Shown here: positions 30,572 to 44,264 of the stretch, piece by piece | How the letters are laid out: each line of letters begins with the position of its first letter | Numbering within the stretch: position 1 is the first letter of the stretch | Source: Piromyces finnis finn | Taxonomy: Eukaryota; Fungi; Neocallimastigomycota | Direction: 5' to 3' | Assembly (NCBI GenBank): GCA_002104945.1 | Contig: MCFH01000031.1 | Location: 124,001-188,000, forward strand | Length of the DNA stretch: 64,000 bases | The notes under the pieces: generated by a model | The model's input: the letters and a program-made list of their open reading frames with translations, nothing else | Told to the model about the DNA's origin: nothing | Database searches by the model: none | Made by a program: the position numbers and the translations under genes

Positions 30572-33500
30572 CTACATTATAATACAATCCTTATTTTTAC
30601 TGGATTTATTAGATTTATTATTATCGAAATTATCGAAGTAAGAAAGTCTTGATTCAATTACTGGTACGGAAACAACAGTAGTGGTTTCAATAGAATATAA
30701 ATCATATTCATCATCTACTTCTGGTTTTGATTCTTTTTGGGAACCCATAGAACGTTTATAACTGTTTATAACTTCATTTTCTTTTGTTTTGGTTTTATTT
30801 TCATTTTCCTTATCTTTCTTAAAGCAAGAAGATTTAATTGTACAACAATTGGAATTTTCAATTTTTTCAGTTTTTTCTTCAACCTTCATTTTTTCCTTTG
30901 AAATCTCTGGTTGTATATCTAGATGTTGTTGCAAAACATCAATTCTTTTAATATTATATTTTTCTTCTGATTTTCTTTTTAAGAATTGATTTTCTATATC
31001 TTCTTCCCTTTTTTCATTTACTATGTTTAAGTCTTCGTTGTCAACAAAGTCTTCATACTCTTTATAATTCTTGAAAATTAAATTCTTCTTATTTTCTGTC
31101 AATTGATCTTCAGATAACGAATGTGAATAGTTGTTAAATGATGAATTTATGTGTATATCCATATCGGATATTTCCTTTGTTTCATGGTCTTCAAAAACAA
31201 GTGCATTTTTGATTTGATCGATTAAATCCTTTCCACTGTAACTATCATCTTCAAGAGTATCATCTAAGTTTATAATCCTTTCTTCACTTTTTGTAAGATT
31301 TTGAAGTTTTCCAATGATTGATTTACCTTCATTATATTCATCTTCATCATTTGTAATAACTCCTTCATTTACTAAATTTGATAAAGATATTTCATTCAGA
31401 TCTTTTAAATCTTCAATAGGTTCTTCACTAATGTGTTTATTAACAACTTTCTTAGTTCCTTTAATAGGATCTACTACAATAAGATATTTTATGATTCGTT
31501 TTACAAAAGTTTTTTTACCAATTTCTGAAGGAACATCAATCATCTCTTCTTTAATAATTGAAATTGGTTCTTGTAAAGTTTGTTGAATAGGCTTTTCATT
31601 TTGTTGCATACCAACTATTTCCTTTTCACCTGTAACTAGATTAATTTTATAAATGTATTTAGTTGTTTTTTTCATAAATTTTTTATTATTTGGTCTAGAA
31701 TATGGTGCTTCGATTATTTCCTCTTTAATTGTTGAAACTTCCTTTATAAAATTCTCATATGGTTCTTCAAAAGTTTGTTCCTCAATAGCTTCCCTTTCAC
31801 CAGTATTTGGGTTTATTCTTGAAATGAACTTTGTTATTCTTTTAACTAATCTCTTTTTCCCTTCATTATCTGGTACTTCTATAATTTCTTCTCTAATTGA
31901 TATTAAATGTTCTTGGGATTGATTGTTATTATTATTATTATTATTATTATTATTATTATTATTATTATTATTATTTATTATTATTATTATTATTATTATT
32001 ATTATTATTATTATTATTATTATTATTATTATTATTATTATTATTATTATTATTATTATTATTATTATTATTATTATTATTATTATTATTATTATTATTA
32101 TTTATTATTATTATTATTATTATTATTATTATTATTATTATTATTATTATTATTATTATTATTATTATTATTAACTTCATTATCTTGATTTATATTATTA
32201 CTAATTTCTCTTTCATCAATTATTTCCTTTTCACCGGTGACTGAGTTAACCATATATCTTGTAATTTTCTTAGAATATCTGTGATTGACTTCTTCAGTTG
32301 GAATTTCAACTGTTTCTTCTTTAACATTAATTATTGGTTCTTCAAATAATTGTTTTCCAATAATTTCCTTTTCACCAGTAACTGGATTAACTTTAATAAG
32401 ATATCTTATAATTTTCTTTAAAAAACTTTTTCTAGAGGATCCTTGAGAAGGAACTTCAATAATTTCTTCTCTTACAATTACAATTGGTTTATTAGAATTA
32501 TGTTCAACTGATTCTTCAAATGATTGTACCTCAATAACTTCCTTTTCTCCAGTATAGGTATTAATTTTAGTAATATATCTATAAATTTTTTTAATAAATC
32601 TTTTATTTGCTGCTTCAAAAGTTGGAACTTCAACAAGATCTTCTACAACTGTAGCAACTAACTCTTCATAAAATTGCTCTGATGATTGATTATCAATTAC
32701 TTCCTTTTCACCAGTGATTGGATTAATTCTATATCTGATAATTCTTTTTACGCAACTGCCATTATCTATTTCTTCTGATGAATGATCCACATTTCCTCTA
32801 GAAATTTGTAAACCACCACATGAGTAATTAATTGGATCTTGAACAATTTCCATCTCTCCAGTTTTTGAATTAATTTTAACATAGCTTCTAATAATTTTCT
32901 TAATAAATCTTTTCTTTCCTTCTTCCTCAGATGGAACTTCAATAATTTCTTCTTTTATTATAAGAATAGGTTCGTTAAATTCAGTAATTATTTCATCAAC
33001 ATATTTATCTTCAACAACTTCACTTTCACCTGTTATTGGATTTACTCTAGTTAGATATTTTATTGTTCTTTTTGCAAATTTTTTCTTTCCTGATATATTG
33101 GATGGAACTTCGACAATTTCTTCTCTTATTGCACACATTGGTTCTTCTGAAATATTCTCAACTGGTTCATCAACCATTTCTTTTTCTCCAGTTTCTGGGT
33201 TAATTCTATATTTAGTTACTCTTTTAGTGTACATAGTTTTATTTGATTCTTCTGAAGGAATTTCAGCTATCTTTTTATCAGAATTACTTTCAATTACAGA
33301 ATTTTGGATTTTTTTATCCTCAATAATTTCTTTTCTTTCACCTGTAATTGGATTTATGGTAATTAAATAAATTAAAACCTTTTTAGAAATCTTTTTTCCT
33401 CCACTTTCATCATCAGATTCAACTAATTTTTCTTTTCTTATTCTTATTGGTTGATCAAGGTTTTCAATTGGTATTTCAAATGGTTCTTCATTAATAATCT

Positions 33501-42500: not shown

Positions 42501-44264
42501 TTCTGATATTGAATTTTCAGAAATAATATTAGAACTACTATCATTATTCTTAGATTTTTTATTTTTATTTCTTCTAGACTTCTTACCAAATACCCTAAAC
42601 TTTACATTCTTTTTTAATTCTTCATTTTCTGAAAGTGTTTCTTCTTTAGATTTATCAGAAATATTTCCTTCTTTTGGTTCAACAGAAATTTCTTCAATTT
42701 TATGTGGAATAACATTAAAAGTAGTATTTTCATTAATTACAGATTCAGAAACTATATTTTCTTTTTCTGATTTTCCATCAGTAAAAATAATATTTTCATT
42801 TTTAATATCTAATTTAGAAAAGGATTCTAATTTTTCTGAAACATTTTCTTCAATTGGCTCTAATTCAATAATTTCTTCTTTACCAGTATTTGGATTAATT
42901 CTCTTAATATACTTTATTATTTTCTTAATATATTTCTTTTTTCCTGGAACTTCAGAAGGAACTTCAATAATTTCTTCCTTTGATTCCGGAATTAAATCCT
43001 CACTTGGTTCAATAAAAATTTCTTTAACTGGTTCTTCAACAATTTCTTCTTTTCCTGTATCTGGATTAATCCTCTTAATATATCTAATAATTCTTTTAAC
43101 AAATTTTCTCTTTCCTGTAACTTCTGAAGGAATTTCTACAATTTCTTCTTTTACTTCAGATGCTGGAATTTCAGAAATGATCTCATGCTCTACAATTTCA
43201 GATGGCTCTTCATCCTCTACAATGTTAGTAGTTATAATTCTTCTAATAGTTCTTTTAGTAACATACTTTTTTCTACCTGTAATAGGATCAACAACAAGCT
43301 CAGTAGTTTCAGTAATACCACCTGGTAATTCCTTTGTAATAATAGTTGGTTCTACTTCTTCTTTTGAAACGTTCTTATTAATAAGTTTTCTAATAACTCT
43401 TTTTGTAACATGCTTCTTTTTGCCAGTAATTGGATCAACAATAATTTCAGTAGTTGAGGTTTCTCCATCATGGACTTCAGAAAGATCTTCCCCAATATTT
43501 TTTGTGATTACCTTTCTAGTAACCTTTTTTGTTACAGTTTTCTTTTTACCTGTTTCTGGGTCAATAACAACTTCTGTAGTAGTAGAAGTTTCTCCATCAG
43601 CACCTTCTACAACACTTTTTTCAAAAGACTCACGATTTAATTCATCACTTGAAGCATTGTCAATAACACTTTCAGATACAATATTATTTTTTTCATTTAT
43701 ATTAATATCTGGAATATTAAATTTAAAACTATTAAGGAGTCCACTTTTATTTGATTCATCATTATTTTCATCTATTGGTTTTTGACTTAAATTATCATTT
43801 TTAATACTTTCTTCAATTTTATCTAATTTTTCTTTTGATTCTATTACTGAAATTCCACCTGTTTCATCCATAATAATAGAATCCATATTAGTAATAAATG
43901 ATTTTTCACCTTGTTCGATATGTTCTGTTCTATCATTGATTATCGAAGTTTCAATAATTATATCACCTTCATTATTTATATCATCTTCTAAAATTGAATA
44001 TTCAAAATTTACAACCTTTGTAATAGTCCCATTTTCATCTTCTTCAACTGTAACATCTTTTTTAACATTGCTAGCATTCTTATCAATTTTAAAGTCAGTA
44101 TTTTCAAAATTATTAAATTTTTCAATTTCATCTTTATCATAATAAAATATTTCTTCTACAAATTCTGGATTTTCAGAATCATTGTTTTTTATTTTTCTTA
44201 TTGTTTTTGAAACTTTAAAATTGGTATTTTGTGTTTCACCTTCATTTAAATTATTTCCCAACAT
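30572..44264 (-). CDS. Giant acidic Glu/Val/Ile/Pro/Lys-rich tandem-repeat protein (~4,560 aa if the single-base lesions are corrected), apparently one exon
   Basis: The ATG at 44264 (MLGNNLNEG) opens a unique region that runs in frame into the 126-aa repeats. The array exits in frame into the 32098-34269 ORF (..KNKKKYIKRIIKYKRKNP..KLNNNEKSK). A poly-Asn tract then leads to in-frame NQSQEHLISIREEIIEVPDNEGKKRL.. and the 30572-31675 ORF. The same protein motif recurs in all parts. The frame is broken by ~9 indels in the array and 2 in the (AAT)n tract. Confidence 0.8.
31926..32173 (-). repeat. (AAT)n tract encoding ~80 Asn inside the giant repeat gene, with two single-base interruptions
   Basis: There is an extra T near 31975 and near 32101. 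Removing exactly these two bases reconciles the flanking frames (codon starts 34269 and 31675). I found no phase-compatible GT-AG intron around the tract. Confidence 0.75.
34390..42380 (-). repeat. Coding tandem array: 20 near-identical ~378-bp units (366-390 bp through 12-bp EEPA/EEPV sub-repeat variation) plus one extra ~165-bp half unit near 35595-35760
   Basis: The core gggacttcaacaatttc...gatcttcttaatgtatttaatgattctc recurs 20 times, matched by 20 shadow ORFs in the track. The unit translates as EETKTVEVIPEETVETKEEIVEVPTEESGRKRFIKRIIKYIKKINPTTGEEEIVEEKSEEPAEEPVEEPIVESVV.... Confidence 0.95.

Follow-up and report, generated by a model that had tools for sequence, protein, structure and literature searches.

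The window, a stretch of 64,000 nucleotides of a Piromyces finnis contig, carries on its minus strand a gene-like reading that starts with an ATG at 44264 and ends with a stop codon at 30572-30574. On this strand lie 39 copies of a small repeated module, 20 in a tandem array and 19 diverged, in agreement with the ~35–40 copies proposed in the initial annotation, which had described an intact single open reading frame of ~4,500 aa. The coordinates, the strand and the architecture of that description hold, but one open frame of 4,500 codons does not, because 11 frame breaks interrupt it; the longest open pieces are 945 aa (44264-41430), 1987 aa (38061-32101) and 509 aa (32101-30575). From start to stop, the parts of the gene are:

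43815..44264, minus strand: start codon (44264) and conserved N-terminal region of ~150 aa beginning MLGNNL, by orthologue comparison
43230..43610, minus strand: three permuted modules, VDPxTGKKKxVTKRxIRK, kept in P0007, P0040, P0046 and P0047
42840..43166, minus strand: two diverged full modules of the EEIVEIPSEVTGKRKFVKRIIRYIKRINPDTGKEE type, by module search
42385..42839, minus strand: unique Asn/Ser/Lys-rich linker preceding the array, by translation
34381..42384, minus strand: tandem array of 20 full 378-nt (126-aa) units, by TRF, unit anchors and unit alignment
33781..34380, minus strand: one partial module, then a unique acidic region with a conserved ITRRVVTEIITL block, by translation and orthologues
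32191..33780, minus strand: ten contiguous diverged modules without long spacers, with orthologous rows in P0001, P0003 and P0037
31922..32173, minus strand: (AAT)n tract coding for ~83 Asn, by TRF and translation
31415..31921, minus strand: last three modules, the input of the structure model (nine AlphaFold2 strands)
30587..31414, minus strand: conserved C-terminal tail with an NCC motif at 30842-30850, by six-tail alignment
30572..30586, minus strand: CaaX box Cys-Ile-Ile-Met (C-I-I-M) and stop codon, the codons TGT ATT ATA ATG TAG reading from 30586 to 30572

According to TRF, the array has a period of 378 nt, an identity of 96–97% and a score of 12445. Each unit comprises one ~45-aa module, predicted to be of beta type, and one ~80-aa Glu/Pro/Val spacer, and unit 17 carries one extra spacer-only insert of ~150 nt. 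The 20 near-identical copies recognised at the outset correspond to the 20 array modules, with protein-level identity among all of them, and the joining EEPV/EEPA-type segments correspond to the E/P/V-rich spacers. Outside the array, diverged copies were found in about the numbers anticipated, that is, three permuted VDPxTGKKK and two diverged modules towards the N-terminus (two to five proposed) and one partial, ten and three modules towards the C-terminus (~14 proposed). A simple alternation of long and short subtypes, on the other hand, does not describe the C-terminal order, in which the ten-module run reads short-long-long three times, a fourth short module precedes the poly-Asn stretch and three long modules follow. 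Among the orthologues, the MLGNNL/MLGSNL start motif is common to P0007, P0046 and P0047, with residues 1-330 52–76% identical; the ITRRVVTEIITL block is kept in P0001, P0037 and P0046, and the (AAT)n tract is missing from P0001. Orthologous AT-rich transcript-like contigs contain N-terminal parts (P0007, P0040, P0047) or C-terminal parts (P0001, P0003, P0037, P0010, P0011), and the Piromyces sp. E2 model P0046 has the same N-terminus and the same CIIM tail in one protein.

The 5′ part of the gene is transcribed. The RNA runs contain 0.95–1.00 of the sampled words of 42400-44300, and for the intergenic stretch 44700-48500 they contain at most 0.06 of the words, versus 0.97 in DNA run X2. RNA contigs of 1.6–2.1 kb are colinear with the DNA and have ends 54–200 nt upstream of the ATG, and both RNA and DNA short-read contigs are colinear through the linker down to 42340. 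A molecule spanning the whole array, RNA or DNA, was not seen in the short-read contig data.

Why has a gene of this size been annotated only as a fragment? The public gene model BCR36DRAFT_95591 is 100% identical to the window's protein, an identity that also bears out the suggestion of a zoosporic fungal host, here Piromyces finnis. The model has 854 aa, most likely because the assembly carries reading-frame errors. Nine frame-disrupting indels lie in array units u02, u04, u05, u06, u07 (two), u10 (two) and u11, near 41457, 40685, 40310, 40012, 39587, 39557, 38576, 38435 and 38058, and two single-A insertions in the (AAT)n tract, near 32102 and 31975, each shift the frame. All nine array indels are at positions that vary between units. 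Of the 319 consensus columns, 10 are polymorphic by substitution, and all five distinct indel sites fall on or directly beside one of these, a coincidence whose chance we estimate at ~3e-6. The P. finnis genome derives from PacBio reads only, assembled with Falcon, FinisherSC and Quiver (PMC5622200). Short-read contigs directly contradict only two of the 11 breaks: two extra letters at 40684 are missing in contigs of DNA run X2 and of RNA runs X1, X3 and X4, and one contig of DNA run X2 puts back a letter at 41456. At the sites covered by short-read DNA and RNA contigs no frameshift was confirmed; the other nine are uncovered because collapsed-repeat contigs were placed at one location only.

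Real frameshifts would mean a pseudogene in decay, or a gene giving only an N-terminal product of 854–945 aa with the downstream repeats untranslated. The number of breaks and the end of the public model at 854 aa fit such a reading, and the same type of deletion is found in five units, as might happen if it had spread by unequal crossing-over. However, in this PacBio-only assembly the indels fall exactly at the unit-variable sites and two are contradicted, and none is confirmed, by the short-read DNA and RNA contigs, 1987 codons are open without interruption downstream of the last array break, and the C-terminal modules, the tail and the CaaX box retain 40–67% identity to orthologues, so that we regard real frameshifts as very unlikely. 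Most likely, the 11 breaks arose as errors in the consensus of near-identical repeats, in a genome assembled from PacBio reads alone. The assembled array may deviate in another way, as its contigs in DNA run X2 show a word depth 16–65 times that of the single-copy flank, versus 20 assembled copies, and a 31-letter unit variant present in all four runs is missing from the window. Mis-assembly, a longer array or a paralogue may lie behind this, and the array word depth could also have been raised by GC bias.

Regarding the module itself, Asn, Thr and Gly of the NPxTG turn are at least 90% conserved and Pro is present in most modules, and the PSExxG loop is well conserved. Conserved turns of these kinds are typical of hairpins. 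The basic segment also displays the periodicity of an amphipathic helix, with hydrophobic spacing i, i+3/4. An AlphaFold2 model of the last three modules (31415..31921), built on a 55-row alignment, reached a mean pLDDT of 85.7 and a pTM of 0.61, with nine strands and five models agreeing; each module is modelled as an acidic strand, a basic strand, the NPxTG turn and an acidic strand, with strands of 11–14 residues. For the array unit, the modules have pLDDT values of 75–85 and the spacer, modelled with no secondary structure, 44–56. Thus, a beta fold for the module and disorder for the spacers are predicted. The proposal of a long rod of beta ribbons agrees with the three long strands predicted for each module, but a continuous rod in the main array is not supported: the 80-aa spacers are predicted to be unstructured, and the array looks like beads on a spring.

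It could be argued that the repeats adopt no stable fold at all and are a disordered polyampholyte, or amphipathic helices binding membranes, calmodulin or nucleic acids, acting as a polyelectrolyte brush or condensate scaffold. The composition of the array unit is indeed extreme (43 Glu, 15 Pro, 17 Val and 10 Lys in 126 residues; 34% Glu; net charge −30), the spacing of hydrophobic residues in the basic segment would suit a helix, the annotated fragment is modelled poorly from its single sequence in the ESM Atlas (pLDDT 0.41, pTM 0.20), and no globular fold match was found. Against this, the alignment-based model gives high pLDDT and the same strand pattern in three modules and five models, the hairpin-typical turns are conserved, and module length and strand register are kept across paralogues at 30–45% identity. 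We therefore judge the absence of a stable fold to be unlikely.

The module is undescribed, as had been suspected from its sequence. Pfam-A hmmscan of three window pieces found no family match at E up to 1, a Pfam scan of eight relatives found none at E up to 0.1, the conserved N-terminal region has no Pfam match, and PDB sequences and the ESM Atlas contained no described counterpart. The profile search suggested in the initial annotation, run exhaustively against 1.84 billion protein representatives, returned only 35 hits, with only a handful of AT-rich, anaerobic-fungus-like relatives and two parabasalid-type proteins. The distribution of the module is thus narrow.

Two known families had been mentioned as reminiscent of the repeat. 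The G5-E rods of the staphylococcal proteins SasG and Aap (3tiq, 4wve, 4fum, 8deo) also consist of tandem small modules; these have a few long antiparallel strands and no conventional hydrophobic core, a build that the Piromyces module would share if it folds as predicted. They are nonetheless bacterial, secreted and wall-anchored, whereas the Piromyces protein is eukaryotic, has no signal peptide and is CaaX-ended, and the acidic/basic/acidic charge-segregated strand pattern is specific to the Piromyces module. Foldseek ranked 4fum, 3tiq and 4wve at the top against the PDB, weakly (E ~0.01–0.03, TM ~0.2), and G5-domain proteins at the top among non-relatives in the AFDB clusters; structural matches were weak overall (TM ≤0.37, VIA Z ≤5.3). 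The G5/E likeness therefore persists in the identity of the closest structural analogues, Aap and SasG, but it is faint and comes with no G5 (PF07501) Pfam match in the window pieces or the eight relatives. Alveolins (IMCp, PF12314) resemble the Piromyces protein in having a repeat rich in Val, Ile, Glu and Pro and in the sub-membrane role proposed for it. The EEIVEVP motif, present once per Piromyces module, resembles the EKIVEVP repeat of alveolins, which lack the basic strand and NPxTG core that define the Piromyces module. The ESM Atlas feature search placed an IMCp cluster at rank 29 with a score of 0.43. The alveolin/epiplastin reminiscence did not extend to family membership: PF12314 was not matched at E up to 1 in the window or up to 0.1 in the relatives, and the host is a fungus, not an alveolate.

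That the protein is a divergent alveolin/epiplastin member or a eukaryotic homologue of bacterial G5-E adhesin rods would account for the motif in every module, for the first place of Aap/SasG among non-relatives and for the IMCp cluster. Yet with no IMCp, G5 or other Pfam match in the window pieces or the eight relatives at these E cutoffs, a basic strand and NPxTG core foreign to alveolin repeats, a fungal host, a cytoplasmic-type CaaX end in place of a signal peptide or wall-anchor motif, and low structural scores (VIA Z 3.4 to 4fum over 52 residues), such descent seems highly improbable.

Two further resemblances concern the spacers and the core of the module. Like titin PEVK, the 80-aa spacers have a Glu-, Pro- and Val-rich composition, are of low complexity and are predicted to be unstructured, a likeness of kind and not of homology; UniProt automatically names the paralogue A0A1Y1XK93 'Titin-like'. 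The Piromyces spacers differ from PEVK in being far more acidic and in alternating regularly with predicted beta modules. Ig and Fn3 domains are absent from the Pfam results, as is PPAK/PEVK; only a PT-repeat came up, below threshold (15.2 bits versus a cutoff of 26.2). The two parabasalid-type proteins, one of them from Trichomonas, have a 25-column core in common with the fungal module. Trichomonas vaginalis TVAG_278990 (P0026) contains 13 copies of a basic strand, NPxTG turn and acidic strand (KKRIVHKFVTVVKKKVNPETGKEELVEEK), and P0033, a similar protein encoded on an ENA contig and only assumed to be parabasalid, has 13 copies of the same type. Aligned by hhalign to the fungal module profile, the TVAG_278990-type profile gave a probability of 91.9% and an E-value of 6.8e-07, over only 25 of ~52 columns, and individual copies scored 2–17 bits in hmmsearch. 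Their unit differs, being ~90–100 aa long with an extra Ala/Glu-rich segment, helical-looking in our reading, and having neither the EEIVEVPSExxG strand and loop at the fungal position nor a CaaX box. This likeness may reflect homology, transfer or convergence.

The C-terminus ends in a conserved CaaX box, a feature unmentioned in the initial annotation and, in our view, the strongest clue to the protein's site of action. CIIM is invariant in seven tails (window, P0001, P0003, P0037, P0010, P0011 and P0046), and the six-tail alignment has 42 invariant columns, with NCC/TCC in five of the six. A final Met makes a CaaX box a signal for farnesylation, as K-Ras4B and B-type lamins illustrate. With K-Ras4B (CVIM), B-type lamins (CAIM) and paralemmin, the protein shares the C-terminal Cys-aliphatic-aliphatic-Met, a Lys/Ser-rich sequence ahead of the box in several orthologues and a conserved upstream Cys-Cys. 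Unlike in these proteins, the Cys-Cys is not adjacent to the box but ~90 residues upstream, and the polybasic stretch varies from one orthologue to the next; nothing else is alike. As initially stated, the protein has no evident signal peptide or transmembrane segment: the N-terminus is not hydrophobic, the maximum Kyte-Doolittle 19-mer score is 1.1, and the C-terminus is CIIM, not LPXTG. Prenylation, the membrane concerned and a function as a tether are inferred.

The membrane could also be that of the nucleus. The same architecture with its farnesyl anchor at the nuclear envelope or another endomembrane would make a putative lamina-like or organelle-tethering scaffold, instead of a plasma-membrane skeleton, in a lineage without lamins; a Met-ended CaaX is the lamin-type signal, the polybasic second signal for the plasma membrane varies among orthologues, and the many basic segments could serve as nuclear localisation signals. 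As neither a coiled coil nor a lamin-like domain is present and the extreme negative charge speaks against chromatin binding, we consider this location quite unlikely.

Altogether, the locus is probably one transcribed, intron-poor P. finnis gene whose cytoplasmic product, at least ~4,500 residues long, would serve as an extensible tether anchored in a membrane or as part of a membrane skeleton. A conserved N-terminal region and five modules are followed by the 20-unit central array, 13 contiguous modules and the CIIM tail. In the proposed model, each module would consist of the acidic strand EEIVEVP, the central basic strand KRFIKRIIKYIKRI and, after a tight turn at NPxTG, another acidic strand, EKEIVEE, the whole held by cross-strand Lys/Arg-Glu pairs and Ile/Val ladders instead of a buried core. 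The farnesylated C-terminus would enter a membrane from its cytoplasmic side. The run of contiguous modules would be a stiff stalk, the central array, extensible and strongly negative, would work as a spring or spacer, and the conserved N-terminus would bind a partner. Such a protein, a membrane-anchored tether or an element of the membrane skeleton, would be peculiar to anaerobic gut fungi. A bolder and rather speculative extension is that the module is a new autonomously folding, single-layer, charge-zipped three-stranded domain common to Neocallimastigomycota and Parabasalia, unrelated groups of eukaryotes of the anaerobic gut, by ancient descent or gene transfer, which in fungi builds a farnesyl-anchored giant elastic filament of the membrane skeleton or an organelle tether; if true, this filament would fill a role held elsewhere by spectrin, alveolins or lamins.

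Should the module fold in the predicted way, it would provide a compact beta sheet from nature in which salt bridges between strands take the place of a hydrophobic core, of interest for work on folding and on protein design. Because long-read consensus errors accumulate in near-identical coding repeats, a protein of ~4,500 residues came to be annotated as an 854-aa fragment, and similar truncation of repeat genes may hold in other PacBio-only assemblies. Anaerobic gut fungi matter for fibre digestion and biotechnology and their cell biology is almost unknown. This protein would be among their largest and, being transcribed, lineage-specific, built from an uncatalogued domain and equipped with a conserved membrane-anchor signal, would offer a practical entry point to the study of the cortex or membrane skeleton in zoospores and thalli.

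The window is very AT-rich, with a GC content of 13–23% outside genes and 35% in the repeat. The landmarks of the gene under study are, by position in the window:

44264, minus strand: ATG start codon that opens the gene-like reading
34381-42384, minus strand: tandem array (Tandem Repeats Finder: 378-nt period, 96–97% matches, score 12445)
31922-32173, minus strand: (AAT)n microsatellite of ~83 copies, coding for a poly-Asn run in a linker between modules
30572-30574, minus strand: stop codon that ends the reading begun at 44264

When anchored on the codons of the basic segment, the array resolves into 20 units, mostly 378 nt apart. 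Each unit encodes 126 residues, comprising one module, EEIVEVPTEESGRKRFIKRIIKYIKKINPTTGEEEIVEE, and one spacer of ~80 residues rich in Glu, Pro and Val, inside which lies a degenerate half-copy of the module that has no basic segment. A single unit contains 43 Glu, 15 Pro, 17 Val, 14 Ile and 13 Lys+Arg, for a net charge of -30. A turn-motif scan of the gene counted 39 modules in total: ahead of the array, three permuted VDPxTGKKK variants and a pair of diverged modules; within it, 20 modules identical among themselves; and, after it, one partial module, ten contiguous diverged ones and three more beyond the poly-Asn tract. These numbers agree with the counts of the initial annotation. Its proposal that short and long module subtypes tend to alternate was right as to the existence of both subtypes, but their order is not a simple alternation: the C-terminal series consists of three short-long-long triplets, a fourth short module just ahead of the poly-Asn tract, and three long ones past it. 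Because the (AAT)n tract is missing from the orthologue P0001, it represents a recent expansion specific to the lineage of the Piromyces finnis gene.

Is the gene intact? It had been described as coding for a single-exon protein, and as assembled it is not one open frame: the reading is interrupted by nine indels in the array and by two extra A's in the (AAT)n tract. Stop-to-stop analysis yielded long open pieces of 945 aa (44264-41430), 1987 aa (38061-32101) and 509 aa (32101-30575), with repeated frame changes between 41.5 and 38.0 kb. Alignment of the array units placed the nine frame-disrupting indels near 41457, 40685, 40310, 40012, 39587, 39557, 38576, 38435 and 38058. Five units lack one nucleotide at a shared column; unit u06 has lost a single nucleotide and u10 has gained one, u04 has two extra bases, and u07 has a 12-nt duplication short of one base. 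An intron at the (AAT)n tract was considered and rejected, since the tract offers no usable frame-keeping splice sites and the two extra A's account for the frame shifts.

Substitutions between units affect only 10 of the 319 consensus columns, yet each of the five distinct indel sites lies on or beside one of these columns, a coincidence whose chance we estimate at ~3e-6 with a one-column tolerance. Such placement is what one expects of a consensus caller that mixes reads of different units, and the Piromyces finnis genome was assembled from PacBio reads alone, using Falcon, FinisherSC and Quiver (PMC5622200). Contigs of four public short-read runs, one DNA-type (X2) and three RNA-type (X1, X3 and X4), were aligned over 38000-43900. 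The two extra letters at 40684 are omitted by all four runs, in every contig aligned there, the letter at 41456 is restored by one DNA-run contig, and the frameshift forms occur in no contig of the four runs over this interval; the contigs directly cover two of the eleven breaks, both in the array. Past the last array break ~2,000 codons stay open, and the downstream modules and the tail are conserved in other species. For all these reasons the frame breaks look like consensus-error artefacts, and that the locus is a real pseudogene, as the breaks taken at face value would imply, is very improbable.

Independent assemblies of orthologues show a related behaviour. The C-terminal ends of P0040 (from ENA) and P0047 (from JGI) enter an out-of-frame, LLKKNQLKK-type reading where the repeats start, so that frame errors or assembly breaks at the array are common across several data sets. 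A separate observation concerns the contig of the distant paralogue P0006 (L002), in which an in-frame TAA stands at 2840-2897 where EEIVEVP expects Glu and the module sequence resumes afterwards; the cause is an error of sequencing or else a genuine truncation.

The size of the array deserves a similar comment. Over 38000-42384, array contigs of the DNA run X2 have a word depth of 2,400–9,500 versus 147 in the single-copy flank, that is 16–65 times the flank for 20 assembled units. In addition, a 31-letter unit variant whose gene-strand translation is KPVEEAVEEV occurs in each of the four runs at contig joints 38125/40307 and 42304/41454, with a depth of ~1,000–1,600 in three runs and 78 in X3, and is found nowhere in the 64-kb window, even allowing two mismatches. 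The assembled array may be imperfect in further ways; the depth excess and the missing variant could come from a larger true array, from a paralogous array or from GC bias.

As a practical by-product, the assembly indels explain why the public gene model, the 854-aa BCR36DRAFT_95591 of Piromyces finnis, to which the window protein is 100% identical, is a fragment. Continuity of the gene is seen in the Piromyces sp. E2 model P0046 (992 aa, starting MLGNNL and ending CIIM), which unites N-terminal region, VDPxTG modules, post-array block and tail within a single gene that lacks the array. The other relatives are AT-rich, transcript-like contigs of 2–4.5 kb from JGI and ENA samples that span one end of the gene, N-terminal or C-terminal, and break off at the repeats. 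The RNA-type runs, which come from the same organism, contain 95–100% of the sampled words of 42400-44300 and at most 6% of those of the intergenic stretch 44700-48500, of which the DNA run contains 97%. RNA contigs of 1.6–2.1 kb are colinear with the DNA over 42340-43900; they stop 54–200 nt upstream of the ATG, and the DNA contig continues. Thus, the 5′ part of the gene is transcribed and has no intron there, and from the orthologous transcript-like contigs we infer that transcription extends over the rest.

The distribution of the module is narrow. An exhaustive search of 1.84 billion representative proteins with a profile of 16 diverged modules returned 35 matches at E ≤0.001, 17 of them at E ≤1e-10. 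The strong matches were orthologue fragments, a few other module-bearing proteins (P0006, P0016, P0018 and P0019) from similar AT-rich contigs, and a small paralogue of Neocallimastix californiae and N. lanati, ORY85882.1; a Titin-like paralogue, A0A1Y1XK93, was added from AFDB. The small paralogues P0009 / P0012 (N. californiae ORY85882.1; 333–388 aa) combine 3–5 modules with a ~100-aa non-repeat segment that does not resemble the beta module, so short proteins can contain the module as well. Among annotated genomes, in the length range that could be searched, only Piromyces sp. E2 has the C-terminal tail. The bacterial matches P0017 and P0029/P0045 (JGI annotates the second pair as streptogramin lyase) were discarded, as they have in common only a VNPxTGD turn within apparent beta-propeller blades; judging from those inspected or named, the other weak unnamed matches are probably propeller proteins too, and not relatives. 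A second group of weak matches comprises Trichomonas vaginalis TVAG_278990 and a protein like it encoded on an ENA contig; in both, a basic strand followed by NPxTG and an acidic strand is repeated 13 times. When the profile of this Trichomonas-type module was compared with that of the fungal one, the result was 91.9% probability and E 6.8e-07 over 25 columns only, which is suggestive, not decisive.

That no known domain had been recognised holds under wider scrutiny. Three window pieces and eight relatives, scanned against Pfam, returned sub-threshold noise only (DnaB_bind, KIX_2, PT, HH_signal), and a sequence search of the PDB gave no match below E 0.04. ESM Atlas feature searches with modules, N-terminus and tail scored at most 0.67 and revealed no consistent family; a paralemmin cluster at 0.60 is a lead only. 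The literature on TVAG_278990 and on titin-like proteins in Neocallimastigomycota yielded nothing relevant.

Which fold could such a module adopt? AlphaFold2, given a 55-row alignment of orthologous and paralogous three-module windows, predicted for the last three modules nine strands of 11–14 residues, three per module (mean pLDDT 85.7, pTM 0.61; all five models 83–86). In each module the three are the acidic EEIIEVP strand, the basic one and a second acidic strand past the NPxTG turn, in keeping with the beta-type module first proposed. The prediction for an array unit bounded by two modules again showed three-stranded modules (pLDDT 75–85), with an 80-residue spacer that had no secondary structure (pLDDT 44–56). 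As we read the side chains, charged and Ile/Val residues are mixed on both faces of every strand, and the sheet would be held by cross-strand Lys/Arg–Glu pairs and aliphatic ladders, like single-layer sheets. The basic segment is also compatible with amphipathic-helix spacing, and an Atlas single-sequence model of the annotated fragment was poor; given the consistent AlphaFold2 strands, we consider it unlikely that the whole protein is a disordered polyampholyte or that the basic segments are helical.

Among known structures, the G5-E rods come closest, if only weakly. Foldseek placed the Aap and SasG G5-E structures at the top in the PDB (E 0.01–0.03, TM ~0.2) and, in AFDB clusters, paralogues first and G5-domain proteins next (E ~1e-4). 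No known fold emerged from a wide VIA-align search, whose best Z of 5.3 came from single modules placed onto generic three-stranded sheets, or from an Atlas shape search (TM ≤0.35). Defining features of the alveolin and G5-E families, such as a match to the IMCp or G5 profile, were looked for and found to be lacking, which makes membership in either extremely improbable.

The protein ends in Cys-Ile-Ile-Met followed by the stop codon, a signal that the initial annotation had not reported. In an alignment of six tails this motif is invariant, 42 columns are invariant overall, and five of the six carry a Cys-Cys motif ~90 residues upstream; P0046 likewise ends in CIIM. CaaX boxes in which X is Met are farnesyltransferase substrates, as in K-Ras4B and B-type lamins. 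The reported lack of a signal peptide or TM segment is borne out, the maximum Kyte-Doolittle 19-mer score being 1.1. From the conserved CIIM and this lack, the protein most likely resides in the cytoplasm, with its C-terminus anchored in a membrane from the cytoplasmic side. The basic stretch preceding the CaaX box is not conserved and so does not point to a particular membrane; the same architecture placed at the nuclear envelope or another endomembrane has a low probability.

These elements suggest how a chain of predicted beta modules and disordered acidic spacers might work. The farnesylated tail would anchor the molecule, the 13 contiguous C-terminal modules could serve as a stiffer stalk and the 20 units of module plus spacer as a strongly negative tether able to extend, and the N-terminal region, which is well conserved and includes three VDPxTGKKK modules, may bind a partner. 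With its G5-E-like modules, PEVK-like springs and CaaX anchor, the gut-fungus protein is alike in kind to G5-E rods, PEVK springs and CaaX-anchored proteins, but it is a member of none of these scaffold families. Its module is in none of the domain catalogues searched, and public databases list it and its relatives solely as hypothetical or automatically named fragments. We infer a role, confined to anaerobic gut fungi, as a membrane tether or an element of the membrane skeleton.
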